A stretch of DNA of 64,000 bases from NCBI RefSeq assembly GCF_003704095.1, contig NW_020844913.1:1-64000 (forward strand), read 5' to 3'. This DNA comes from Pocillopora damicornis (lineage: Eukaryota). Every line of letters begins with the position of its first letter. The stretch's first letter is position 1. The notes under the pieces are model-generated. The model had not been told where the DNA came from and did not search any database. It was given only the letters and a program-made list of their open reading frames with translations. Positions 35,268-51,044 of the stretch are shown here, piece after piece. A program made the translations under genes and the position numbers.

Positions 35268-36182
35268 AAATTTTTGAATTTAGAAATGCGCTGTTATCCA
35301 CAATCTTTTAACTGCCTAGACACAGATGAACTGGTAAAGTCTCGTCAGTCAACTGTTATGATTGTCCATTTCAACGGTGCGATAAGCGAATGGGGTGACT
35401 TCCGCGTTGCTTAGAGTTAAATTGCGCTGTAGATATTCGGGTTATCTATTTGCTACATCATTGAAAGATCGTGGTGAAAGAGAAGAACTACCAGTGATCG
35501 TCATCAAGACAATACGCCCCGTATTCTATTTTTGGTGTAACAAAAAACCCGCAGTTTGGTTATCTACTCGCTTATTTGGCTTTTTGTATGCATCTCAGAA
35601 TTTCATTCTAAAAAGCTACACCACTGTGACAACTCATTTCCAGACTGTTTCATCTTCATCTGCAGTGAATCGAACAAGATCGTCTGTTCAAGTTGGCAGA
35701 CTGATTGACACGACATGTAGGTGCGATAATATGGTAGCAGTAATGCCAAAAAAAAAACCTTGCTACTTCTCTTGTCTTGCCTAAGTGTTGGAAATTAGGG
35801 AAAAGTACCTCTCCGTTCTTTCGGCGGTATAATGCACGCAGCATTTTGCGCGCGCAGCGTTCTACTTTTGAAACAAGGCGGTAAGGCCTTTTTTAAAGAA
35901 AGACTCCAAAGCTAACGTTTTGTTTACATAGCCTTAGCGGTACTATCATTACTGTTCAAAATTTACAAAAAGCGACCTTGACTTTACGGCAATTACTGAT
36001 TTACAGGGAGATGAGGTGATCTCCATTATTTGTAATTATTTAATTCACGAGGCACGACGTCAAATGTACTAATTCGTTATTGTGACGTAGAATTAGTATT
36101 GCGAAACTTTTCTTCACATTAGGAGTTGAGTTGCAGTGCGGAGACAAAATTTTCTTATAAGAGAGATTTTCTACAAGGAGAA

Positions 36183-39100
36183 ATGAAATTGTGGGTCGGG
36201 ATTGTGTTCTTGGTTGTGTCGACACAACTGGGAATCAATGCTCGGCCCATTCCAAGATCAAAACCACTACTAAATGATGGTAGGTAAACATTCCTTGGGT
36301 TTCCTACTGAATAATATACATGAAAAAATTACTCAGTTCTGATTGGTTAAGATAAGTGTAGTTTTCAGGTAATTCAATATAGAAGAGGGTTAATTCAGTG
36401 CAAAGAAGTTACAAACCAGACATTCTGATTGGTCAATAATCAAATGCGAGCCTTGGATGTCGCAACATTTGGATACGCTGAAAATTTGCGAGCGAACAAT
36501 GGCCGGCGTTTTGAGTAGGTTTTCTTTCGCCACCGTAATAGAGCAGCTGAGAAACAGCTCTAATAACGAAAACACTACCTTTTGGTTTTCGGTTTGGAAA
36601 AAGTGGTGTTTAGATAAAGGAATTGCTAAGGAAATCGAAAATTACGAGCCGACCCAGCCTAACACTTTACTCGAGCCATTCTACGCCAAAATTAAAAACA
36701 AACATGGTTAAACCTCGCAAACGACGATTCCATTTCATCGAAAGTGTTTCGGACACAGACTGAACAATTCCTTGAACTGTTTCGCCGGACTTTGAACTTT
36801 TTTGCGTCTTAGAGATGTGAAAATATTGTATATTATTGTTTTGATTGTACGCGGTTGTTTTGACCGAACGCGCACTGTCACTTGCAGGTTTGAATAAATT
36901 ATTTTTGCACTTGATGCGCGCGCTTTGCTTCTGCATAATAGGCCATCTTCCAGTTGTGTACTTAGTTGCTAAGCCTTTGATTTGGAGTGAGGCTGAAGGT
37001 GACCTTGTTGTGGTAGAGACCAGTATCCAATTAGCATGATAACAAAGTAATTTGCATTTGAAAAGCAGCAAGGTTTGTATCATAACAAGGTCACCCTTAG
37101 CCTCATTCCTGTTCAAAGGCTTGGCATCCAAGCACACAACTGTAAAATGGACTATTATGACAAGCTATCTCGTATTTTTTCATGTATATTATTAATACGA
37201 AATCACATGATTTTCTTTGTGCAATTTGGAATAAATAAGCACTCGTTAATTTTTTCAAAGACCACAAATTGCACTCGCCCAAAGGGCTCGTGCAATTTTG
37301 TTAGTCTTTGAGAAAAAATTACTCGTGCTTATTTATTGCACTCGAAATCATGTGATTACCTATATAATAATAATTAATAGGTCAACCGGGTATATCGTCT
37401 TGTGGGGTCACCAACCAATGACTGGAGCTTATGAACGAAGGCCAATCATTGTAACATTATTAATTATAGAAAGTGATAGCACAAAGTTGGCAGACGTATC
37501 CTGCTTCAGGCGCAGGAAAATGTAATCGACAAGATCATAGCGCGAATTACTGTGCCAGACATAGAACTTGGTAGGGCAAAACCAAAGTCAGTAATAAAAA
37601 ACAGCTCTAATCGCCGAAGGTCATGTTGATAAAGCATTTTTAAATTCTAATTTCCTCATTTTTTATGCGGTTGGGGAGGGTACATCGAACACTAGGGGTG
37701 AATTTGTTCGACATAATCAGTAATAAAAAGAGCTGCACGCACTTCTTTAATGGATTGCGCGACCCAAGTGATGCTAAAATTTTATTGAGTAGTTTATCTG
37801 AAGCAAAGTGACTAATAAAGCAACGACTGCTGAAAAGCGCTTGTGTTAAAACTGCTTTTAAGTAGGTTTTAAGTACTTTGCAGCCAGCTTTCAGCGTTTG
37901 TCCAGGAATGAAACAGTCGAACTGAGGTGTTCAAAAGATAGGCTGTATATCCATGTTAGACAACTGTCAATAGGCAGTAATTGATGTAAATTCCCGACAA
38001 CTTTCAATTTTTCAAAACCTTCCCTGATTCTTTGGCAAGTCTGTAGTGTTGCGACCGTTGCTATGGCTCCAGGGCGTTAGCCCACGAAAGTCCGTGATGT
38101 GTACATACGTTTTTTTAACTCTGTTATTCTAAGTTGTTTAGTTTCTGATACTCTTACGTCGTGCGCGTAGATTTTCATTTTAAGGTAGTTAAAGTAAAGT
38201 ACTCTTAAGCTCACGATAAGCCAGTTCTGGCTCGGCGAAATGGTATCAAAGGTTTCAAAGAGTAACGGTAGGGTTCAGAATGATAATTTACGTATGGCTG
38301 GACACTGACACTAAATTTCCTAAAGAGTAGTTAAGATGAAAAGCTATCAGCCAACAGTCTTCCACAGTCTGATGACGTCAGTTTTAGACTTCCCTAGCAT
38401 TAAAGGTAGGTACCCCGAAAATGATCCACCTCCGAATGAAGATGGTATTAACGACTCTTTGCATGATAAAGGTGGAGCCGATGACGATGAAGAAGCCAAC
38501 TGGACTAACGGTGATGATTACAACGAAAATGCCGAGTGGAGAGACAAAGAAGGAGGTGACTCTATCGATGGTGAAGGTAGGCCCCCACGACCTTGAAGAT
38601 TAACATCGGAATTGAGATGATACTAATGACCATCTTGGTGCTATAGGTGATCCGGATGACGACGAAGACGCAGAGTGGAGAGACGGTGATTATGATCACT
38701 CTATCGATAGTGAGGGTAAGTTCCGTACAACAGACATTGACAATGACGTTGATACAAATGAATCCCTAAGTACTTAAAGCAATCCCCATGAAACTTATCA
38801 CGCAGAATCCACATCGGAGTAAAGATGATACTAATAACCCTCTTTGTGCTTAAGGTGAGCCCAATGACGATGAAGATGCCAAGTGGAGCGACGGTGATGA
38901 CTTAATCAACAGTGAAGGTAAGCCCCATGAAAGTACGGGTTTATATGAGAATGACACTGATGCTAATGATATCCCTGCTTAAAGCACTAACAGCTTACTT
39001 TTTGTTAAAGGTGAGCCGGATGTCGATGAAGATGCTGAGTTAAGTGGCGGTGATCGTGATGAGTCTAGCGATGCTGATGGTGAGCTAGAAAATGAGAATT

Positions 39101-42100
39101 TATATGTCGATAACGTCTATACTAATGACCATCTTGGTATTTAAGGTGAACTCGATAGAACTGAAGACTCAACTGAAAACAATGATGATCCTGATGATTA
39201 CTTCGGTATTGAGGACGAGCACAGTGATTATTCTAATGGTAAGCTTCCTGAAACTCAAAATTTTTTTATCAGAATAAGAATGATACTTATGTTACCTTTA
39301 GTACTAAAGGGGAGCCCCAGATAGTTCCACGAAACTTATAATGGTGAATAACCAAAGAGAGGGAGGACACTTACGTTTCTCTTGATGCTCTAGGTGAACT
39401 AGATGGCGATGAAGATATCGAAAGGAGTGAAAGTGAGGATGAGGACCTCATCCATAGTGAAGGTAAGCCTCAGAAAACTTTTTCGTGGAGATTGACATCG
39501 AAATAAAGATGATACTAACGGCTCTCATTGTGCTAAAGGTGAGCCAGATGGCGATGAAGATGCCGAGTGGAGTGACAGTGAAGAAGATGACTTCATTGAT
39601 AATGAAGGTAAGTCTTAGGAAAGTAACACAAAGATTGACATCGCAATTAGGATGATGCAATAACTCTCTTTATGCTAAAGGTGAGCTGGGCGGCGACGAA
39701 GATGTCAAATGGAGAGATAATGACGATATTGACCTCGTGGATAGCGACGGTAAGACCCACTAAACTTATCATGAAGATTGACATGGGAATTAAGATGATA
39801 CTATGGACTCTCTTTGTACTTAAGGTGAGCAAAATAGCGATGAAGATGCCGATTGGATAGACAGTGAAGATGATGACTTCATCGACAATGAAGGTAAGCT
39901 TAATGAAAGTAACATGGAGTTTGGCATTGGAGTTAAAATGATACAAATGACTATTTTTGTGCTAAAGGTGAGCCGGATGACGATAAAGATGTCGAGTGGA
40001 GAGATAGTCACGATGATGGCCCCGTCGATAGTGATGGTAAGCCCCATAAAACTTATCCTGAGAATTGACATCGGAATAACGATGACATTAACAACTCTCT
40101 TTATGCTACAGGTGAGACTGATGGTGATGAAGATATCGAGTGGAGTGACAGTGATGATAATTCTATTGATAGTGAAGGTAACCCTTATGAAACAAATCAT
40201 AAATTCCACATCAGAACTAGAATTACACTAACGACTCTCTTTTTGCCAAAGGTGAGCCGGATGGCGATGATGATACCGATGGGAGAGTCAGTGACGATAA
40301 TGACCTCATCAATAGTGAAGGTAGGCCTCATAAAAATTACCATAGAGATTCACATCATAATCAAGATGATGTAAACGGCTCTCCCTGTTCTAAAGGTGAG
40401 CCAGATGGCGATAAAGATGTCGAGTGGAGGGACACTAAAGATGATGACCTTATCGATCGTAAAGGTAAGCATTATGAAAGTAACGTGAAGATTAACATCG
40501 GAATTAAGATGATACAAATGACTATCTTTGTGCTAAAGGTGAGCCGGATGGCGATGAAGATGTCGAATGGAGAGACAGTGACGATGATGACCTCGTTGAT
40601 GATGATGGTAAGTTCCCCGAAACTTATCCTAAAGATTAACATCGAATTTAAGATGATACTAACGACTTTATTTGTGCTACAGGTGAGCGAGATAGCGATG
40701 AAGATGCCGATTGGAGAGACGGTGAAGATGATGACTTCATGGATAGTGAAGGTAAGCTTTATGAAAGTAACATGAAGTTTGATATCGGAGTTAAGATAGC
40801 ACAATTGACTATCTTTGTGCTAAAGGTGAGCCGGATGGCGACGAAGATGTCGAATGGAGAGACAGTGACGGTAATGATCTCGTCGCTAGTAACGGTTAGC
40901 CTAATGAAACTTATCATGAAGATTCAAAACGGAATCAAGATGATACTAACGACTCTCTTTGTGCTACAGGTGAGCCACATAGCGATGAAGATGCCAATTG
41001 GATAGATGGTGAAGATGGTGATTTTATCGATAGTGAAGGTAAGCTTTATGAAAGTAACATGGAGTTTGACATCGGAATTGAAATGATACAAACGGCTTTC
41101 TTTATACTAAAGGTGAGCAGGATGACGATGAAGATGTCGAGTGGAGAGACAGTCAAGATGATGGCCCCGACGATAGTGATGGTAAGCCTCATGAAACTTT
41201 TCATAAAAATTGGCTTCGGAATAAGGATGATATTAACAACTCTCTTTGTGCTACAGGTGAGACTGATGGTGATGAAGATATCGAGTGGAGTGACAGTGAT
41301 GATAATTCTATTGATAGTGAAGGTAACCCTTATAAAACAAATCATAAATTCCACATCAGAACTAGGATTACACTAACGACTCTCTTTTTGCCAAAGGTGA
41401 GCCGGATGACGATGCAGATACCGATGGGAGAGACCGTGAAGATAATGACCTCATCGATAGTGAAGGTAAGCCTAATAAAAGTTACCATGAAGATTCACAT
41501 CGTAATCAAGATGATGTAAACGACTCTTCCTGTTATAAAGGTGAGCCAGATGGCGATGAAGATGTTGAGTGGAGAGACAGTGAAGATGATGACCTTATTG
41601 ATAGTGAAGGTAAGTCTTACGAAAGTAACGTGAAGATTGACATCGGAATTAAGATGATGCAAATGACTATCTTTGTGCTAAAGGTGAGCCGGATGGCGAT
41701 GAAGATGTCGAATGGAGAGACAGTGGCGATGATGACCTCATTGATAATGATGGTAAGCTCACCGAAACTTATCATGAAAATTGACATCGGAATTAAGATG
41801 ATACTAACGACCCTCTTTGTGCTACAGCTGAGCAAAATAGCGACGAAGATGCCGAGTGGAGCGACAGTAAAGATGATGACTTCATGGATAGTGAAGGTAA
41901 GCTTTATGAAAGTAACATGGAGTTTGACATCGGAATTAAGATGATACAAATGGCTTTCTTTGTGCCAAAGGCAAGCCGGCTGGCGATGAAGATGTCGAAT
42001 GGAGAGACAGTGACTATGATGACCTAGTCGATAGTGATGGTAAGTCCCATGAAACTTTTCATGAGAATTGACATCGGAATTAGAATGATATTAACAACTC

Positions 42101-45100
42101 TTTTTGTGCTATAGGTGAGGCACATGGCGGTGAGGATCTCGAGTGGAGTGACAATGATGACATTTCTATTGATAGTAAAGGTAACCCCAATGAAAGTAAT
42201 CACGAAGTTCACATCAGAATTACGATAATACTTACAGCTCTCTTTGTGCTAAAGGTGAGCCGGATGGTGAGAAAGACACCGATTGGAGAGACAGTGAGGA
42301 TGATGACCTCATCGATAATGAAGGTAAGCCTCAGAAAACTTTTTCATGGAGATTGACATTGAAATTAAGATGAACTGAAGGCTGTCATTGTACTAAAGGT
42401 GAGCTAAATGACGATGAAGATGTCGAGTGGAGTGGCAATAAAGATAAAGACTTCATTGAAGGTAAGCCTTATAAAAGGAACATGAATATTGACATCGGAA
42501 TTAAAATGATACAAATGACTATCTATGTGCTTAAGGTGGGCAGGATGTCGATGAAGATGTCGAATGGAAAGAGAGTGACGATGATGGCCAAGTTGATAAC
42601 GATGGTAAACTCTCCAAAACTTATCATGAAGATTGACATCGGAACTAAGATGATATTAACAACTCTCTTTGTGCTACAGGTGAGCGAGATAGCGATGAAG
42701 AGGCCGAGTGGAGGGACAGTGAAGATGATGACTTCATGGATAGTGAAGGTAAGCTCTATGAAAGTAACATAGAGTTTGACATCGGAATTAAGATGATACA
42801 AATGGCTTTTGTTGTGCTAAAGGTGAGCCGGATGAATATAAAGATACCGAGTGGAGAGACAGTGAGGATGATGACCTCATCGATAATGAAGGTAAGCCTC
42901 AGAAAACTTTTTTATGGAGATTGACGTTGAAATTAAGATGATACTGAAGGCTCTCATCATGCTAAAGGTGATGGCGATGAAGATGTCGAGTGGAGTGGCA
43001 GTGAAGATGATGACTTCGTTGATACTGAAGGTAAGCCTTATGAAAGTAACATGAAGATTGACATCGAAATTAAAATGATGCAAATGGCTCTCTTTGTGCC
43101 AAAGGTGGACAGGATGTCGATGAAGATGTCGAGTGGAGAGACAGTGACCATGATGACCTCGTTGATAATGATGGTAGGCTCCCTGAAACTTATAAAGACT
43201 GACATCGGAATTAAAATGATACTAACGACTCTCTTAAACGACTCTCCCTGTTATAAAGGTGAGCCAGATGGCGATGAAGATGTCGAGTGGAGAGATAGTG
43301 AAGATGATGACTTCATCGATAGTGAAGGTAAGTCTTACGAAAGTAACGTGAAGATTGACATCGGAATTAAAATGATACAAATGACTATCTTTCTGCTAAA
43401 GGTGAGCAGGATGGTGACGAAGATGTCGAATGGAGAGACAGTGACGATGATGACCTCGTTGATAATGATGGTAAGCTTCCTGAGACTTAGCATAAAGATT
43501 GACATCGGAATTAAGATGATATTAACGACTCTGTTTGTGCTAAAGGTGAGCCAGATAGCGATGAAGATGCCGATTGGAGAGACAGTGATGATGATGACTT
43601 AATCGATAGTGAAGGTAAGATTTATGAAAGTTACTAAAGTTTAACATCGGAGCTAAGACCATACAAATGACTATCTTTGTGCTACAGGTAAGCAGGATAA
43701 TGATGAAGATGTCGAGTGGAGAGACAGTCACGATGATGGCCTTCTCCACAGTGATGGTAAGCCCTATGAAACTTATCCTGAAAATTGACATCGGAATAAG
43801 GATGATATTAATAACTCTCTTTGTGCTTCAGCTGGGGCAGATGGTGATGATGATATCGAGTGGAGTGACAATAATGATAATTCTGTTGATAGTAAAGGTA
43901 ATCCTTATGAAACAAATCATAAATTCCAAATCAGAACTAGGATTATACTAACGACTCTTTTTTTGCCAAAGTTGAGCCGGATGGTGATGAAGATATTGAT
44001 GGGAGAGACAGTGAAGATAATAACCTCATTGGTAGTAAAGGTAAGCCTTATGAAAGTTACCATGGAGATTCACATCGCAATCAACATGATGTAAACGACT
44101 CTCCCTGTTATAAAGGTGAGCCAGATGGCGATGAAGATGTCGAGTGGAGAGATGGTGAAGATGATGACTTCATCGATAGTGAAGGTAAGCCTTACGAAAG
44201 TAACGTGAAGATTGACATCGGAATTAAGATGATACAAATGACTATCTTTCTGTTAAAGGTATGCCAAGTGGCGATGAAGATGTCGAATGGAGAGACAGTG
44301 ACGATGATGACCTCGTTGATAATGATGGTAAGCTTCCTGAGACTTATCATAAAGATTGACATCGGAATTAAGATGATATTAACGACTCTCTTTGTGCTAC
44401 AGGTGAGCCAGATAGCGATGAAGATGCCGATTGGAGAGACAGTGATGATGATGACTTAATCGATAGTGAAGGTAAGCTTTATGAAAGTAACTTCGAGTTT
44501 GACATCGGAATTGAGATGATGCAAATGGCATTCTTTGTGCTAAAGGTGAGCAGTATGGCGATGAAGATGCCGAATGGAGACACAGTGACGATGATGACCT
44601 CGTCGATAATGATGGTAAGCTCCCCGAAACCTATCACGAAGATTGACACCTGAATTAAGATGATACTAACGACTCTCTTTGTGCTACAGGTGAGCGACAT
44701 AGCGATGAAGATGCCAAGTGGAGGGAAAATGAAGATGATGACTTCAGCGATAGAACAGGTAAGCTTTATGAAAGCATTATGGAGTCTGACATCGGAATTA
44801 AGATGATAAAAGTGATTATCTTTTTTGCTAAAGGTGAACTGGATGGTGATAAAGACACCGAATGGAGTGACAGTGAGGATGATGACCTCATCGATAGTGA
44901 AGGTAAGCTTCATAAAAGCTATTATGGAGATTAACATTGCAATCAAAATTATATTAACAACTCTCCTTGTGCTTAAGGTGAGCTAGAAGGTGATGAAGAT
45001 ATCGAGTGGAGGGACAGTGAGGATGATGACCTCATTGATAGTGAAGGTAAGCCTCAGAAAACTTTGTTATGGTGATTGACGTCAAAATTAAGGTGATACT

Positions 45101-45940
45101 AACGGCTCTGTTTGTGCTAAAGGTGAGCCAAATGGCTATGAGGATGTCGAGTGGAGTGACGGTGGTGATGACTCTATTGATAGTGAGGGTAAGTTCCATG
45201 AAAGTAAGGTTTTCTCTCTCAATAACGCCAAAAGTAATGAGCTCTTGGCATTAAAGGTGAATTTGATGGAACGGAAGACCTTGATCACCATGATGATGAT
45301 AGAATTGACTACTCTGGTATCGAAGAGGAGCTCGTTGAAAATGAAGATTCGAATCAGAAAGAGGATACTCAGGACTCTTTCGATTTTGATGTTAAGCTTT
45401 GTTAAAGAAGATGAGCTCCAAGGTACGGGTGATTCGAATCATAAAGAAGATTTTGCTAATGACTCTTTATATATCTAAGGTGGTTCTGATGATAGAGATT
45501 GGGACCAGAATGAAGATGACTACTCTTTCGGCACTGAGGACGACCCTTATGAAAGTGAACATCCCAAACAGAATGAAAGAAATGCTGATGACTCCTCTTC
45601 TGAAGGTGAATCAAATGAGATTTTAGATTCAAATCATCACGTAGATGATATTGACAATTAATTCAAAACGATTGTAGATATCGAAGGTGCTCTCGATGCT
45701 AGAGACGACTTTCCAGAAACCGAAGCTTCAGATCCAGATACCGAAGATATTCGAAACGTCCCTAAATTTGTGGAGCATCACGCGCAATTTGAGGATACAG
45801 AGTGGAGTGATGATGATGACAAGGAGGGTTCTGGAGGCTTTGGAGTTCATAATAATAATGAAGGCATAGAAACTGCATGGTGGAATGACAACAATGAAAA
45901 CACTTTCGATGAGTTTGAAAATAATTTGGAGGAAATCTGA
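36183..45940 (+). CDS. Secreted hyper-acidic (Asp/Glu-rich) tandem-repeat protein encoded by ~50 exons; candidate skeletal organic matrix / Ca2+-binding protein
   Basis: Exon 1 (36183-36279) encodes MKLWVGIVFLVVSTQLGINA-RPIPRSKPLLND (signal peptide) with a phase-1 gtaggt donor. Phase-1 acidic exons then start at about 38388, 38647, 38855, 39011, 39146, 39394, 39539, 39681, 39825, 39968, 40112, 40252, 40396, 40539, 40683 and roughly every 144 bp to 44978 and 45123. They are followed by 45257-?, 45480-45605 and a terminal exon 45678-45940 (...FDEFENNLEEI*), with AATAAA at 46153. Every repeat exon I translated is stop-free with only in-frame indels. Confidence 0.8.
36313..37370 (+). mobile_element. 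Non-autonomous Crypton-like (tyrosine recombinase/DUF3504-type) element in intron 1 of the acidic-protein gene
   Basis: 5' ttctgattgg motifs; remnant ORF MAGVLSRFSF...NENTTFWFSVWKKWCLDKG...IENYEP...LLEPFYAKIKNKHG resembling the N-terminal region of Crypton-A/DUF3504 proteins; 3' hairpin ~37200-37358. Family assignment is from recall. Confidence 0.55.
36938..37155. mobile_element. MITE nested in the Crypton-like element
   Basis: Long imperfect TIRs: ataggccatcttccagttgtgtacttagttgctaagcctttga versus tcaaaggcttggcatccaagcacacaactgtaaaatggactat. Confidence 0.75.
38406..45256 (+). repeat. ~144-bp exon+intron tandem repeat, ~46 copies, with higher-order blocks of 1145 bp and 857 bp
   Basis: Unit is gtgagccggatggcgatgaagatgtcgagtggagagacagtgaagatgatgacctcatcgatagtgaag | gtaagc...gatgatactaacgactctctttgtgctaaag. 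Diagnostic variants recur at offsets of 1145 (40112/41257, 40539/41684) and 857 (43259/44116). Confidence 0.95.
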
Positions 45941-48004
45941 AACTTAAAGTGGAATGAGGACTTTTCTTTTTTTTCATGATAATGATGTTAATTTGATAAC
46001 TGTCAACTTGCTTTCGTGGAATCTATATTTGCGGGAGGGGGGTCTTTGATCAAGATTTTGCAGTGAAGGAAATATGTGGCCAATGAATGAGTGGAAATTT
46101 TGGTTTCTTTTTCTTAAAGTACAACTCCTTCTTCAGTTCTGGTATTCATAACAATAAAACTCTTTGACAGGTTGACAACACAATTTCTCTAAAGTGTGAT
46201 AATTCTCAACCAGTTCATGGATGATGGCCGATCATGCTTTGCGATAAATTTTTTGTCGTTTTCGCTCACTGCGTATTCACTGATCAAGCGCCTGACTTAG
46301 GCTATGGTTCAGTCGGCTTTAGGCTCAGCATCAAACATATTGTATTGCACAAATTTCATGTTATTAACGGTTCTCACTTTATTAGGAGTACCATTCATGA
46401 CCACGCTGAAAGCAAAATGATTATTCTTATCTATTGCATACCCCATGCATTTTTGTCAATTTTTCCGTGTTTTTAAGTTTTTTTTAGTTATTTCTCCCTC
46501 GTTCTCAATCCTTTCTCTTCCGTGCGTCACAAGAGAATAGTTGCTCCCTCAATTCGTGGACTTTTCTACAGATGTTTTGGTTTGAGTTGTGCTAATTGTT
46601 GCCCAGGGAGAGCCAAGTGGTTCTGACAGTTATATACGTACACAAGCTCCTAATATGTCTAATCCAAACGAAGTGCGAAACACCAGATAGACGACGCATT
46701 GGTGTTTTTAATTCGATTACTTTCCAAGAATATTATATCGACTTTTTTTGCATTATGAAAGGTTAGCAACAAAACACAACAACTAAGGAAATGGCAGGTA
46801 ACCATATATATCATGCATAGTGCAAGTAATCCAAAATATAAAGTCAGGGGCGCTCGTTTGTCGTAATCAAACTACACCGTGTTTTAAATCGGATAGATTA
46901 ACAATTTATCGGCTGCTACACTTGTTTTTGCCGTCAAGTCAAAAGGTCAATATTTTATTGAAACATTGCACTCTTCAAAATACTTCGTTAGGAAAATAAT
47001 ACTTTTCTTTTCCGGCATTAATTCAGTTACTACTGCAAAAGACTAATTTATTGCTAGAGACGACTGTCTGACATTTTTACCTTCGGCAATTTTCTGCACC
47101 ATGCGGCGATAATTACGTGATAAAGGGTTACTAAGTTGAGGTAAACACCTTTAAAAAGAACTCTTATTCCATGTTATGTTGTTGAAGCGATATCACTAAG
47201 CCGGTGGAGCTCAGTTTCCTTGATCATGTAAAGGAAAATATAAAATATAATTCGAAGACGAGTGGGTGAAAAGGGAAATAAGAGAGTTTATCTTCCCCCT
47301 CACTACTCCAACGTTAGCCTTCGCTCAATCTTGCGGTTAACCACTCACGATAAACAATTTCTCACGCGTGTCACTAGGTGCACGGACCAATATTTATCAT
47401 TAAGTGCGCTTTAAAATGAAGATTAAGTCACCATTTCAATATCAAAAATAGAAAGTAATCTTTTCTGGTGTCTTGCTCTGCTCTTAACAGAACCTTGTGA
47501 AAAGTAATAAGCATTTGCTTATGGACATCGCCGTCACTGTCATACGAAACCACACCCACTCGTTTCTAATCTTTTCCTTCGTCAAAGCGCCTAATTAGGC
47601 TACAGTTTTCAAAACAGTGAATGGAGTCCAATTTACGTCACGTCAGGGCATATGTGGCAAGGGAAAATGCTTAAAAAACTCTTAATGGGGAGTGCATTAA
47701 TAGTCCATTTTTGAGCCCATTGGTGAGCTGATTGAGAACATCAGCACCTACATCGAAGAATTTTAATGTGATATGCCTTCAGGGAATATTATCGCAGAAT
47801 AGAGAAGCATTTCAACAGAGGTCTTATGCAATTCCACACAACCGAACTTTGGTTCAAGATTACGCGAGAGTCGAGCTATACGGTAATTATTCACGCTAGC
47901 TTAAATTTCGTAGCCCTTAAAGGACTAATTGCTGTTGCACAGACCGTAGAGGAACTAGGAGCTTGATTCTCTTTGCAAAAGCTAACTTTGATAAAACAGA
48001 AAAT

Positions 48005-49099
48005 ATGATGAACTCAAACCAGACGCAGCCAAATTTGACAGGAGCTTCAGATATAGGGACAGTAACAATTGTGCAAGTGACATCGTATGCGCTCATAACA
48101 ATCCTCGGGACTGTTGCAAATTTACTGTTGTATGGTGCACTTCTGAGAAAAAAACAACGAAGCCCCAGCGAATATTTCGTGCTGAATCTGGCTTTTACCG
48201 ATCTCATGACGTGTGTAGTTGGGATTCCTTTAGATATGGCCGAAATTTTAATCCAGCGTTGGCCATTTGGAGCCTTCATGTGCAAAGTTGTGTACCCATT
48301 TCAGACGGCTTTAATAGGAGTATCAGTTGCAACATTGACATGCATGGCCATCGAGCGATATCGGGCCATTGTGACACCTTTCAAGCCAATGATAACAAAA
48401 AGAATGGTTAAGGTTGTGATATCCGCTGTTTGGTGCATATCTGGTGCTCTTGTGTCACCTTACATCGTTGTTCTTGAACATAAACGCGAACAGCTACAGT
48501 GCACCGAAGCGTGGCCAAGTGAGAACTATCCAAAAATGTTCACTATGTGTGTTTTTCTACTCTTTTACTCTCTGCCTCTGTGTATTATTGCCCCGGCATA
48601 CATTTGCATTGGATTCAGATTGTACTCTGACGGAAAAAAGATGAAACGATTCAGCATTAAACAAGGTGCTGGAAATCAGTCGTTCCGAAAGCTGGTGAGG
48701 CAGCGAACAAGGACGAATGTCATTATTGTGAAAACGTTTTTGTTCGGTGCTGTAGCGTTCTCCCTGTGCTTGTTACCCTATCACATTATGTGGTTATGGG
48801 CTGACTTCGGAAATGGTGCTCACTGGAGTTATTTTGGAGATGTACTGGTGTTTGCGAACGCTTTGGTGTATTTCAACAGTTTAGTGGACCCATTTATTTT
48901 TGGAGGCACTGTGATACGACACAATTGGAGTAAAACATGTGCGGCCATGCTTCAAAGGTGCTTGAATATTCAAATGGTTAACGAACGGCGAAAGACAAAC
49001 AACAACGTATCCCTAAAACAACAAAACTGCGATAATTCAACAAAAAAGCCGTACTTTAAGCTTCCAAACGCCCCCATTATTTATACTTCGTCCGTATGA
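48005..49099 (+). CDS. Intronless class A GPCR, neuropeptide-receptor-like (QRFP/NPFF/galanin-receptor-like; 364 aa)
   Basis: N-glycosylation sequons (NQT, NLT), NLAFTD, WPFGAFMCK, ERY, ECL2 CTEAWP, CLLPYH and NSLVDPFIF. First ATG is at 48005. Confidence 0.93.
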   Translation: MMNSNQTQPNLTGASDIGTVTIVQVTSYALITILGTVANLLLYGALLRKKQRSPSEYFVLNLAFTDLMTCVVGIPLDMAEILIQRWPFGAFMCKVVYPFQTALIGVSVATLTCMAIERYRAIVTPFKPMITKRMVKVVISAVWCISGALVSPYIVVLEHKREQLQCTEAWPSENYPKMFTMCVFLLFYSLPLCIIAPAYICIGFRLYSDGKKMKRFSIKQGAGNQSFRKLVRQRTRTNVIIVKTFLFGAVAFSLCLLPYHIMWLWADFGNGAHWSYFGDVLVFANALVYFNSLVDPFIFGGTVIRHNWSKTCAAMLQRCLNIQMVNERRKTNNNVSLKQQNCDNSTKKPYFKLPNAPIIYTSSV

Positions 49100-51044
49100 A
49101 CACGGATCATTAATCTGGCTGTCAAGTTATGTTAGTTATTTAGCGCTAGAGATCGCTTGAGTCGCCAAGCGAGTAAAATATATCGGTTTGTTAAACTTTT
49201 CAGAACGTAAGGTATCAATGTTATTTTCTCTGGGGGCACAATTGTTGCGAAACTTCGATGTTAAGTTTAAAAAGCTGAACTTATTAACCTCTGAAAGATT
49301 TAACTAGGCCTTCGATTGCCAATTATTTTGGACCTCGCCGAGTAATCGATTCAGAGGCTTACATTTTATCTTTGATACTACGCGATAATGCTAAATAAAG
49401 ATATGAATTGCTGCTGTTTGATAAGCACAATGATACCTTCTGCACTGATCGGGTGCATGTAGCTGTAAGTTATCTAAGGCCATATTTTGGAACGATAACA
49501 TTTAACAGTAGTTTCGTGTAGTACCTACAGCCTAACGACCTAAGGTATACCCCCTATTTTGTAACATCAACCGTTTTGAAAGGGAGCTTTCATAAAATTT
49601 GGCGTCTGTTCTGGAAGATTTCTTGGATCCTGATGACACTTTTGTAACCAAAGGAAACTTTAATTGTCAAAATAAGTAAAAGCTTTCCGGGTAAGATGAA
49701 CCACACCATCCTGTTTCCTGAAGAACACAAACCGTTCAACTTGCCTGACGTAAATAGGGAGCATTCTCTTTAATCTCTATCTCGTCTGATTTGTTTTTTT
49801 ATTCCAATTATTATTATTTATTTTTACGAGTTGAGATTTCGTGCTCTTTTTGTGCATCTCAGTCACACCGGTGGCTGATAATCAGGAATACATCATTTCA
49901 CATTTCAAAAATCTTATTATTTTCATAGTTCGTAAAGCGATCAAAGTTTCAACCAACTAAGATTACACTACAAAAGTGAACACAAATTTCCAGTTTTTAG
50001 ATTACTTAAATAATGTTTGAGCAAAAAGACGAGTATTTGAAATCAATTGTTTCAATAACCGACAATTTGATCAATCGTTGTCCTCTTTCAGAAAAGAGCT
50101 CCAGACTACAGTCTGTAGCACAAGGGTATTATTTGGGTGGGTGCAGGAGGAAAGCGTGCGAAGGGTGCTGGTAGGGTGCGTGCGCACAAGTACTTGTGAC
50201 ATACTTCGTCCTTGTAATAATCAAATCCGTCCTTCTGGACTCCTAAAGCAAAAGGCTCTTCCTGCAGGTCAACACATTCTTAACATTGCATTTACAGGTG
50301 TTGTACCCAATTAAGCTTAATTCACGTTGTAATACTTCAGCTGCTGAGACGTGTTAGTGCCAACTAATTTTTCACTACCTACCAGAAAAACGGCCGTCGG
50401 TGAATGTAGACTAAAAATATTGCCAAACCAGACGAAACATTACAGAACTATTCCGAATCAACTCAATTTTTTTTAACAACGGTGTCTCATGTATGATTAG
50501 GATAATACGATTTCCTCAAAATCATCCCTCATTCTATGTGGATTAATCAACTTATTTACTATCATTGTAGACCATTGAGTGCTGGAATTATAGATATGGT
50601 ATTTACGTGGGCTGGAGCACGCGATCTGGGCTTGAACTGTTAATCAAACGCAAGCTACAAGTTATCGTGGGAAATGCCCCCAAGGCAAGATAGATCTTTA
50701 AATCACGTTATATTAATTATAGTTTTACATTGTAAATTACTTAAAAGACAGATTAAAAGCAAAGAATTATGATAAAAATTCCATGAAAAGATGATGTTTT
50801 TTTTATTCATGGTTAATCCTAACAAAGCGAAAACAAATAAACCAAAACTAAACCAAAGAAAACAAAATAGAATCTCTAGAATACCAAAGCCTTCTTTTCT
50901 AACATCGGGCAAGAGGATCACTGCACACAAAGCTGAGTATCCCGCCTAAAATTTTTCAAAGTCCTTGGTGTAACACAACAAACCCCTCTGCAATCTTAAC
51001 AGTGTCGTGATGTCCGTAAACGATTTGAAAAAATGCACAAAAAG

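Follow-up and report, generated by a model that had tools for sequence, protein, structure and literature searches.

The locus described here raises the question of how several dozen short introns of closely similar sequence came to lie within one gene. It is located in a window of 64,000 nucleotides from the coral Pocillopora damicornis, and all coordinates given below refer to the forward (+) strand of this window. A pair consisting of a tiny exon and a tiny intron is repeated about 45 times and makes up an acidic coral gene. A sequence-only reading had interpreted these introns as coding sequence turned into introns, i.e., as intron birth caught in the act. To our knowledge, the origin of spliceosomal introns has been documented well in only a few instances, mostly for single introns. 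The data presented here show an intron that was gained long ago and has been multiplied many times since, and not intron birth in progress.

The locus is a strongly expressed coral gene, the product of which is secreted, very acidic, and built on a 23-residue repeat. Exon 1 (36183..36279), assigned by reading the sequence, begins with a start codon and a hydrophobic leader (MKLWVGIVFLVVSTQLGINA, followed by RP), which by eye resembles a signal peptide; its translation is stop-free and it ends with a phase-1 donor (G|GTAGGT). The long first intron (36280..38471) has its acceptor at either 38405 or 38471. Its last 66 nt (38406-38471) are indeed open, as had been noticed before, and match the intron profile with 21 bits, being a diverged, stop-free copy of an array intron. 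The irregular 5′ edge of the array (38472..39393) was delimited in the sequence by AG|GT sites and unit-profile alignments and consists of diverged units with exons of 105, 69, 63, 69, and 93 nt and introns of 70, 139, 93, 66, and 155 nt, whereby the 139-nt intron (38716-38854) represents two adjacent intron modules that are not separated by an exon. The regular array (39394..45188), defined by the unit table and RNA joints, comprises 41 phase-1 exons and 40 introns. All 41 exons are open and have a length divisible by three (34 of 69 nt, five of 66 nt, and two of 63 nt; consensus GEPDGDEDVEWRDSEDDDLIDSE). The introns measure 75 nt (18), 74 nt (16), 76 nt (three), 73 nt (two), or 85 nt (one), so that 22 of the 40 are not a multiple of three; the 74-nt and 75-nt types alternate across most of the array. 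All 40 align over their full length with a mean pairwise difference of 0.27. TRF confirmed the tandem array with periods of 144 and 287 in about 40 copies, the period of 287 scoring higher than that of 144. Most exon/intron boundaries read AG|GT, with AAG|GTAAG or ATG|GTAAG as donors and AAG or CAG|GTGAG as acceptors. Downstream of the array, a 291-nt intron (45189..45479), a 126-nt exon (45480..45605), and the last intron (45606..45677; 72 nt, phase 1) follow, the joints 45188|45480 and 45605|45678 being present in RNA contigs of the runs X1, X2, and X7. The last intron reads as reported earlier and is a diverged copy of an array intron with a weak match to the intron profile (4.2 bits). The last exon (45678..45940) encodes a unique acidic C-terminal region, has an open frame up to the TGA at 45938-45940, and is covered by RNA contigs. 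A Pfam search with this C-terminal exon, an open unit, and exon 1 yielded no family. A mirtron or structured RNA as the reason for intron conservation was rejected, since the RNA-structure z-scores were weak (-0.1 to -0.4 for three intron types and an unconvincing -2.0 for one open copy) and an Rfam search of 36000-46500 yielded no family.

Splicing was analyzed in the region 40000-45960 on contigs of the RNA runs X1 and X2 (study P1) and X7 (study P3), which stem from two independent studies. GT..AG joints of high depth were found in contigs of these runs at the predicted introns 40608-40682, 42040-42114, 42181-42254, 42324-42398, 43031-43104, 43757-43831, 43898-43971, 44759-44833, and 44903-44977. 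Two exons carry weakened donors. For the exon 40826..40894 (GTTAGC), an X7 contig has a loose end before 40968, the sequence of which corresponds to the last nucleotides of exon 40683-40751 as well as to those of two further exons; the exon 40826..40894 is possibly skipped, a tentative assignment as the genotype of the sample may differ from that of the window. The exon 42536..42604 (GTAAAC) is absent from the dominant contigs, in which a GT..AG joint 42461|42680 skips 218 nt at a depth of 1071 (X1) and 466 (X2), compared with a depth of 29 for an unspliced contig spanning 42544-42695. It has probably been absorbed into an intron, although an allele lacking the unit would give the same joint. 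The contigs also contain multi-unit skips, for which exon skipping, allele differences, or mis-laid repeats all come into question.

The idea of ongoing intron birth had been based on introns that can be read through. In the exon frame, the 75-nt intron consensus does encode an acid-rich peptide with a TGA at codon 11 and a TAA at codon 15, as had been stated, yet only 18 of the 40 introns are 75 nt long. Three copies of one intron type, called D here (40321..40395, 41466..41540, and 44041..44115), were confirmed in the unit table to be 75 nt long and stop-free in the exon frame, with TCA and CAA at codons 11 and 15 and TGTAAAC where others have TACTAAC. About half of the introns are devoid of TACTAAC anyway (the 74-nt type has ACAAATGAC), and thus its lack in the open copies is not special. 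Two further open 75-nt introns (41182-41256 and 44759-44833) bring the introns that are both stop-free and a multiple of three to 5 of 40; the 74-nt introns are stop-free in the exon frame in 16 of 16 cases, and retention of any of them would shift the frame. The three type-D copies occupy equivalent positions in a repeated block of intron types A'-C-D-B, with a spacing of 1145 and 2575 nt, and form one clade. Therefore, they count as one founder and one observation. Since 15% of shuffled introns lack a stop in the exon frame by chance, about six intron types are expected to include one open founder. The acidic in-frame bias of the introns is modestly above chance: six of eight GA dinucleotides start at the first codon position (P = 0.02 when the exon frame alone is considered, P = 0.07 when any frame is allowed). 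As for the suggestion that the stops derive from TCA and CAA, TCA probably preceded TGA at codon 11, being the common state both in a paralogous array and in the edge copies; codon 15 is ambiguous, as TAA is the majority state in both arrays and the edge copies have GAA, GAG, or GTA.

At least two of the three type-D copies are spliced out. For 41466-41540, an X7 contig extends from exon 41397-41465 as far as 41472, and the loose end there corresponds to the start of exon 41541 (AGATGGCGATGAA); the X1 and X2 contigs also reach 41472, matching the first 7 nt of the next exon with one mismatch. For 44041-44115, the X7 loose end at 44047 runs into the next exon, and an X2 joint connects the end of the preceding exon with a start of the next-exon type. 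The copy 40321-40395 has no joint among the 15 shown, and the sole contig across it is unspliced, of low depth, from a random-primed run, and spans stop-bearing introns too. Overall, unspliced contigs reach 1-3% of the spliced depth and cover stop-bearing introns as well. Thus, the expectation that the open copies are retained or exitron-like was not borne out: the contigs, which do not measure rates and would allow for low-level retention, gave no preferential retention of open introns. Coding constraint was also not detected. Diversity by codon position amounts to 0.26/0.31/0.26 in introns versus 0.21/0.17/0.27 in exons, and the introns have no third-position excess. New stop-creating variants are observed in introns about as expected (2 versus 2.2 expected; 1 versus 2.6 expected), in contrast to exons (1 versus 4.9 expected, P = 0.04), and the introns carry indels that are not multiples of three. 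Between the sister corals, exons diverge by 3.75% and introns by 4.45%, the exons being without third-position excess too. The array introns are old, properly spliced, and evolve as ordinary non-coding DNA.

The age of the unit became apparent from a comparison set consisting of the same genome and one close relative, with the intron present in both. A second, paralogous array with an identical 69+75 layout is located on contig C3414; its intron consensus is 91% and its exon consensus 81% identical to that of the present array. By the consensus differences between the loci (7/75 in introns versus 13/69 in exons), the introns seem more conserved than the exons, but the two values are not statistically distinguishable (P about 0.1, a rough estimate), and the difference is accounted for by fast exon evolution. 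A genome search with the 23-residue exon profile gave no third or intron-free copy. A word-index search with the C-terminal exon returned only two 56-residue fragments, which led to the locus of a sister coral; Tara Pacific coral scaffolds contain both loci, and the flanks are 97.7% identical. For 36 of the 40 units, a one-to-one (reciprocal-best) orthologue is present there. The exon+intron unit is thus older than the separation of the two loci and also older than the divergence from the sister coral, which is at odds with the notion of an intron birth caught in the act. The orthologue of 44041-44115 (T41 in L014) is 74 nt long and bears a stop. Together with the neutral gain of stops and the indels described above, this also speaks against the open copies being relics under coding constraint.

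The 3′ edge of the array holds two elements that bear on the relation between exon and intron sequence. The 126-nt exon 45480-45605 is contiguous in RNA with joints on both sides in three runs. Its first half (45480-45541) is of the exon type; its second half (45542-45605) is homologous to the array introns and is translated in the exon frame. At the position of the array-unit donor GGTAAG, the exon carries GGACGAC. The unit profile matches this exon collinearly over positions 9-137 (22.4 bits). The intron-only profile matches its 3′ half with 11.7 bits and its 5′ half with 11.8 bits, the latter in the same register as the exon profile, and also matches the 3′ half of a second element, 45257-45391; none of 1000 dinucleotide shuffles and none of 1000 codon-preserving shuffles reached these scores. 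The element 45257-45391 is a dead exon within the 291-nt intron: its donor is G|TTAAGC instead of G|GTAAGC, and reading on meets an in-frame TAA at 45403-45405. In the sister coral, the counterpart has the same dead donor and in addition an acceptor changed from AG to GG. Thus, an exon with a decayed donor has been absorbed into a longer intron at 45257-45391, as was probably the case for 42536-42604. The last intron, in turn, uses as donor (GAAG|GTGAAT) the site that corresponds to the array-unit acceptor (AAAG|GTGAGC). The homologous boundary hence serves as acceptor in the array units and as donor at 45605|45606, and no single site was seen to be used both ways.

In the coding copies of the intron module, the 3′ end is rich in pyrimidines (CTCCTCTTCT ahead of GAAG), in keeping with a derivation from introns. 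Such copies would be explained equally well by exonization of a stop-free intron copy with a length divisible by three that lost its donor. Moreover, sense codons are required by selection in coding copies, which gives a biased view of the ancestral state.

Whether the intron and coding modules are related was addressed by several alignments, which concern sequences of about 70 nt rich in GAT/GAA and include several tests tried after the data had been seen. In register, 33 of 69 positions of the exon and intron consensus are identical; allowing one 6-nt gap raises the count to 37/69 for the present array and to 41/69 for the paralogous one (P = 0.0006 to 0.04). Under circular shifts, identity is strongly 3-periodic (23-25 matches in phase versus 14-16 out of phase), and the shifts 0 and 6 are the best two among the 25 in-phase shifts. 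All modules align in a single register with 50-64% identity. An nhmmer search of all array introns with the exon profile gave no matches and was no better than shuffles, and free-gap global and local alignment of the window's exon and intron consensus was not significant against dinucleotide shuffles (P = 0.06-0.3). On balance, a common ancestry of the intron and coding modules is probable.

We propose a route that follows the tandem-duplication (Rogers) model combined with the dual-specific-splice-site model. Both halves of the unit, exon and intron, would go back to a single ancestral coding module of about 70 nt, from which they have diverged. This module would have begun with G|GT(A/G)AG and ended with AAG and would therefore have had AG|GT at every module boundary. 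Upon tandem duplication, one boundary could have provided the donor and the next one the acceptor, whereby one copy would have turned into an intron. This event would have taken place before the locus was duplicated and before the sister corals separated. The 144-nt unit (69-nt phase-1 exon plus 74/75-nt intron) was amplified in higher-order blocks, so that a few founder introns multiplied to about 45 here and to a similar number at the second locus. At the less homogenized 3′ edge, a module of the intron family is still read as protein (45542-45605). The parts of this proposal differ in strength. That exon and intron were amplified together, as already concluded from the window sequence, is practically beyond doubt, and this created dozens of introns here and dozens more at the second locus. 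Given common ancestry, the direction from coding sequence to intron is fairly likely. The complete sequence of events, in which an old tandem duplication of an AG|GT-bounded coding module was followed by conversion of one copy into an intron and amplification of the pair, has in our view slightly better than even chances. The widest version, according to which the intron family is a tandem duplicate of a coding module with boundaries usable as donor or acceptor, was mass-amplified from one event to about 100 introns at two loci, and is still converted in both directions, is put forward only tentatively, as somewhat less likely than not.

The earlier suggestion that the introns derive from coding sequence thus gains from the match of the intron profile to coding halves, which none of the 1000 shuffles reached, and is weakened by the fact that exonization would account for the coding copies equally well. 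Exonization is also part of the strongest alternative, in which an ordinary old intron without coding ancestry was simply copied together with its exon. Here, the likeness of exon and intron would reflect composition and a shared splice-site context, and the intron-like halves of the edge exons would be exonized, stop-free intron copies with a length divisible by three, the donor of which was lost so that the next AG|GT became the donor. This would agree with the negative nhmmer and free-gap results, and the pyrimidine tract before the 3′ end of the coding copy would be a remainder of the intron. Exonizable copies would be common, given that 15% of shuffled introns are open, and the tandem intron modules at 38716-38854 provide the substrate that such an exonization needs. 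It does not explain, however, why the intron profile matches the exon-type half of 45480-45605 in the register of the exon profile (0/1000 shuffles), why in-register identity amounts to 48-59% with two in-register shifts ranking best, or why the intron GA dinucleotides lie in the exon frame (P about 0.02-0.04). We regard plain co-amplification as rather unlikely.

It might also be that neither module type was coding first. A non-genic repeat of about 70 nt with one AG|GT would have expanded, splicing between the sites would have made a transcript, and the exon and intron modules would have diverged only then. Such a route was proposed in the paper on dual-specific sites (PMC10809524), and no relatives outside these coral samples and no Pfam family were found for the locus; moreover, its exons evolve nearly as fast as the introns and without third-position excess. 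An open exon-intron-exon unit searched against 1.84 billion protein representatives gave nine matches, all of them short reading frames through introns as generated by prokaryote-style gene calling on coral DNA (one was looked up and derives from a coral metagenome scaffold); an intron-free repeat of 48 residues was not encountered in any protein from a distant organism. Missing relatives are weak evidence, however, as the searches used can hardly detect acidic exons of 23 residues. Moreover, the exons show a deficit of new stops and keep lengths divisible by three, and the gene has an exon of its own for the signal peptide as well as a C-terminal exon of unique sequence. An origin from non-coding repeats is thus improbable. 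Intron birth still under way, with the open 75-nt copies as surviving coding versions or exitron-like sequences that are often retained and translated, is the least probable explanation and largely refuted by the present data: the five stop-free 75-nt introns, the probably older TCA at codon 11, and the type-D copies without TACTAAC would suit it, but two of the three listed copies are spliced out with no retention above the unspliced background, all three form one block-derived clade, one has a stop-bearing 74-nt orthologue, codon-position signal and a deficit of new stops are absent, and the intron is older than the locus duplication and the species split.

If these considerations hold, one founder intron, probably derived from a duplicated coding module, gave rise to roughly a hundred working introns in two reef-coral genes. 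The gene described here also has an intron-family module that is translated and exons that are dying into introns. Should the direction from coding sequence to intron be true, AG|GT-bounded tandem repeats could yield introns in bulk; should conversion go both ways, the locus would be a natural system for exon-intron interconversion. The coral units are short and easily cloned, which makes them suited to minigene work. There is also a practical side, as prokaryote-style gene callers applied to coral metagenomes produce long false proteins by reading through these introns, and such proteins have already entered public protein collections.

Several known systems share features with the coral locus. 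Exitrons are stop-free introns with a length divisible by three that lie inside coding exons and are alternatively retained. Five of the 40 coral introns resemble them in being 75 nt long and stop-free in frame, but they have no preferential retention or coding constraint, and most of the family is stop-bearing or not a multiple of three. Intronization in the strict sense is the mutation of exon sequence into intron (PMC2740785, PMC3002245). In a similar manner, the intron-family sequence 45542-45605 is coding in another unit of the same coral gene, whereas the clear coral cases represent exon death by loss of splice sites and not new splice sites inside an exon. For the array introns, the direction from exon to intron is only fairly likely, and orthologues devoid of the intron are not known.

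Repeated and homogenized introns are known from spider silk genes, such as the flagelliform spidroin and MaSp2 of Argiope (PMC9779670). Like these, the coral gene encodes a secreted, highly repetitive protein of structural type in tandem exon-intron pairs with mutually similar introns, has two alternating intron types with a core unit of two exons and two introns, and belongs to arrays that turn over fast between close species. The coral units are, however, far smaller (69-nt exon and 74/75-nt intron), pairwise intron identity is about 73% compared to about 98% in spidroins, and a relationship between intron and coding module, as it appears to exist in the coral gene, is not asserted for spidroins (PMC9779670).

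Dual-specific AGGT sites have been described in the human tandem-repeat genes UBC and VCX3A, where whole units can be removed as introns with the frame kept, and unit removal at such boundaries was proposed as a route to new introns (PMC10809524). The coral locus is comparable in that a homologous boundary is an acceptor in the array units and a donor at 45605|45606. In UBC, a site can act in both roles and what is spliced out is intact coding sequence, whereas the coral exon and intron modules are fixed and long diverged. Finally, intron gain by tandem genomic duplication according to the Rogers model was reported for the potato RdRp gene (PMC4974935) and for Drosophila (PMC2891723). As in these cases, the coral intron has AG|GT at both ends and about the length of the neighboring coding module; it starts like the following exon (GTAAGCC versus GTGAGCC), ends like the preceding one (AAAG versus GAAG), and is similar to the coding module in register. 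The published gains (PMC4974935, PMC2891723) are recent and near-identical, whereas the coral halves are 48-59% identical and the event is old, and therefore homology is probable but not certain. The coral case further differs from the published gains in that the exon-intron pair was afterwards amplified dozens of times.

Division at AG/GT (AG|GT) sites of the array, which TRF reports as a tandem repeat with periods of 144 and 287 nt and about 40 copies (39378-45193), yielded 41 exons (34 of 69 nt, five of 66 nt, two of 63 nt) and 40 introns (18 of 75 nt, 16 of 74 nt, three of 76 nt, two of 73 nt, one of 85 nt). All 41 exons are multiples of three in length, stop-free in the exon frame ("open") and in phase 1-1, with the consensus peptide GEPDGDEDVEWRDSEDDDLIDSE. 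The sequence-only reading had given 75 nt as the consensus intron length, which holds for the 75-nt class (18/40) but not for the rest, as 22/40 introns have a length that is not a multiple of three. Upstream of the array, a start codon and a hydrophobic, signal-peptide-like leader (36183-36279) end in a phase-1 donor; downstream, the sequence contains a unique acidic exon that runs to the stop codon at 45938-45940. The gene matched no Pfam family. The 139-nt intron at 38716-38854 consists of a tandem pair of intron modules with the exon absent in between, and the 85-nt intron at 43174-43258 is a hybrid in which an A-type 5' part is joined to a D-type 3' end and the 10-nt overlap is duplicated, D being the type of three open copies discussed below. 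Both are traces of unequal exchange inside the array. The +1 frame of the exons likewise has no stops in the exons and 75-nt introns of 39394-45188, so that reading frames extend across both for as many as 262 codons; public collections contain false proteins (P0003 to P0011), derived from prokaryote-style gene calling of coral metagenomes, in which array introns were read through.

RNA contigs of four runs were mapped to 40000-45960 only, whereby X1 and X2 are poly-A runs of the same study, X7 comes from a different study and X5 is random-primed. Runs bearing the locus are present in several studies; their labels, together with the Tara Pacific scaffolds described below, show that the window is of coral origin. 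In X1, X2 and X7, GT..AG joints lie exactly at predicted introns, with contig depths of hundreds to thousands; the supported introns are 40608-40682, 42040-42114, 42181-42254, 42324-42398, 43031-43104, 43757-43831, 43898-43971, 44759-44833, 44903-44977, and 45606-45677. At the open intron 41466-41540, an X7 contig enters as far as 41472 from the upstream exon and its loose end is downstream exon sequence; X1 and X2 contigs also extend to 41472, where the end matches the first 7 nt of the next exon with one mismatch. The same contig pattern is found at 44047 for the open intron 44041-44115. As the contig ends at 41472 and 44047 carry on into the next exon, both open copies are spliced out. Unspliced contigs reach about 1-3% of the depth of spliced ones, a figure that is not a retention rate, and include stop-bearing introns (42605-42679, 43757-43831), and X5 covers every kind of intron at a depth of 2-6. 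The suggestion that open 75-nt copies are preferentially retained finds no support here: two of them are spliced out, and the contigs do not single out open copies.

The RNA-supported joint 45188|45480 makes 45189-45479 a single 291-nt intron, in which a former exon is embedded. This "dead exon", 45257-45391, has the donor G|TTAAGC (GT changed to TT), and read-on from it would meet TAA at 45403-45405. The dead donor is shared by a sister coral, where the acceptor AG is lost as well. Exon 42536-42604, which has the weakened donor GTAAAC, is absent from the dominant X1 and X2 contigs (joint 42461|42680) and is tentatively taken to be skipped there, and exon 40826-40894, with the weakened donor GTTAGC, may be skipped in X7, where a loose end precedes 40968. 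Both assignments are tentative because alleles differing in unit number yield the same joints.

The array had been proposed to represent intron birth caught in the act, with an intron-poor version to be looked for in related corals. When the window's own genome was searched at the DNA level, a second array emerged on contig C3414, with 69-nt exons and mostly 75-nt introns; the consensus sequences of the two arrays are 91% identical for introns and 81% for exons. No locus beyond these two was found in the genome with the 23-residue exon profile. Two database fragments of 56 residues, reached from the C-terminal exon, led to metagenome scaffolds of Tara Pacific corals. Among these, L014 comes from a close relative and is orthologous to the present locus, and L026 is the orthologue of the second locus. 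Despite flanks that are 97.7% identical to those of the window, L014 has 47 regular units (L014:2612-9350) vs 41 in the window (39394-45188); its exon and intron classes are those of the window. A tree of 110 units matches window units one to one to units of the relative, with 36 reciprocal-best pairs, and the paralogue units branch outside these pairs. The second array, the relative's loci and the unit tree together place the exon+intron unit before the locus duplication and the species split. Thus, the birth of these introns was not caught in the act, and the relative carries the same exon and intron classes instead of an intron-poor orthologue. About 2 kb downstream of the gene, at window positions ~48000-49100 (from L014:12342-13436), there is a gene for a 364-residue rhodopsin-type receptor (Pfam 7tm_1), with conserved synteny in the scaffolds of the sister coral. 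In the 3'-terminal part of the paralogue gene (L012:330-690; C3414 ~178330-178690), an intron-like module passes in frame, after its first 33 nt, directly into the C-terminal coding region, no acceptor separating the two, and the frame there stops at TGA (TGG in the window's gene), 26 codons short of the conserved stop. Dead donors (ATAAGC, CTAAGC) are also present in two paralogue units.

As had been noted, translation of the 75-nt class consensus in the exon frame gives an acid-rich peptide interrupted by TGA (codon 11) and TAA (codon 15). The introns 40321-40395, 41466-41540 and 44041-44115 carry TCA and CAA at these codons, are open, and have TGTAAAC replacing TACTAAC; the sequences of 38406-38471 and 45606-45677 also agree with the earlier description. 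As a distinction of the open copies, TGTAAAC fails, since the 74-nt type is likewise without TACTAAC. Additional open 75-nt introns are 41182-41256 and 44759-44833. The three D-type copies are all genuinely open but do not constitute three independent cases: they occupy the equivalent slot of a repeated block and form a single clade, and therefore go back to one founder. Shuffled introns were open in the exon frame in 15% of cases, so that it is not surprising for one founder to be open out of about six intron types. The acidic fraction in frame 0 of the 75-nt class is 0.16, vs 0.05 ± 0.04 in shuffles, and 6/8 GA dinucleotides of the intron lie at codon position 1 (P = 0.02 for the exon frame, 0.07 for any frame). 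The open frame is thus as expected by chance, whereas the acidic bias modestly exceeds chance. With regard to the proposed origin of the stops from TCA and CAA, codon 11 is mostly TCA in the paralogue, and TCA/TCG also occurs in the 3' half of the dead exon, the last intron and the D-type copies, for which reason TGA is probably derived. At codon 15, however, most units of both arrays have TAA, GAA, GAG, CAA, AAA, and GTA being found among edge and coding copies as well as in scattered units, and the ancestral state is ambiguous.

Within-array diversity at codon positions 1/2/3 amounts to 0.21/0.17/0.27 for exons and 0.26/0.31/0.26 for introns, and the paralogue is alike. Orthologous units of the window and the sister coral differ by 4.45% in introns and 3.75% in exons, with no third-position excess in the introns. 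Unique stop-creating variants occur in introns as expected in every frame (2 observed vs 2.2 expected; 1 vs 2.6), and exons show a deficit of them that is confined to frame 0 (1 vs 4.9 expected; P = 0.04). Length changes are all multiples of three in exons and mostly 1 or 2 nt in introns, and the open intron 44041-44115 has a 74-nt, stop-containing orthologue in the sister coral. With no third-position excess, stops at the expected rate and 1-2-nt indels, the array introns do not behave as coding sequence. Exon changes between orthologous units number 40, 24, and 28 at codon positions 1, 2, and 3, the first position being the commonest, and the protein is under little constraint in its evolution.

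In order to judge the claimed coding ancestry of the introns, ordinary comparisons were of little help, as free-gap alignment of the window's exon and intron consensus detected no similarity and a search of the introns with the exon profile gave no match. When exon and intron were both begun at GT, 33/69 positions matched without gaps, and one 6-nt gap raised this to 37/69 in the window and 41/69 in the paralogue (P = 0.0006 with simple shuffles, 0.002-0.04 with codon-preserving shuffles). Circular shifts revealed 3-periodic identity (about 24 matches in phase vs about 15 out of phase), and shifts 0 and 6 rank top among the 25 in-phase shifts. The 3' edge of the array provides stronger evidence than these alignments. 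Exon 45480-45605, contiguous in contigs of three RNA runs with a joint on either side, is collinear with the entire exon+intron unit (profile positions 9-137) and has GGACGAC at the place of the array donor GGTAAG. The next 64 nt, its 3' half, are translated in the exon frame and score 11.7 bits against the intron-only profile, which 0/1000 shuffles of either kind reach; the 3' half of the dead exon reaches a higher score (16.1 bits). The exon-type 5' half of 45480-45605 bridges the exon and intron families, since it matches both profiles in one register (exon profile 8.0 bits; intron profile 11.8 bits, 0/1000 shuffles). All modules can be aligned in one register with 50-64% identity. Taken together, exon and intron modules are probably diverged copies of one ~70-nt module with AG|GT bounds. 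The boundary 45605|45606, homologous to the array acceptor, serves as a donor according to its RNA joint. A coding ancestry of the introns is supported insofar as the intron profile matches the coding halves of 45480-45605, but ordinary alignments are empty and exonisation may be the actual direction. In that case, the coding copies would be stop-free intron copies, multiples of three in length, whose donor was lost: they have kept a pyrimidine-rich 3' end, and a tandem pair of intron modules exists at 38716-38854. Their being stop-free is necessary whichever the origin.

With respect to known systems, the nearest architecture is that of spider silk genes, whose introns are repeated, homogenised and sometimes alternating (PMC9779670). 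The model of intron gain by tandem duplication (PMC4974935, PMC2891723) fits one ~70-nt AG|GT-bounded module behind exon and intron, and the idea that AGGT at the unit boundaries of tandem repeats creates introns (PMC10809524) also fits such a shared module. The nearest mechanisms are tandem-duplication intron gain and dual-specific splice sites, and the array founds no new kind but adds a coral example to those already known.
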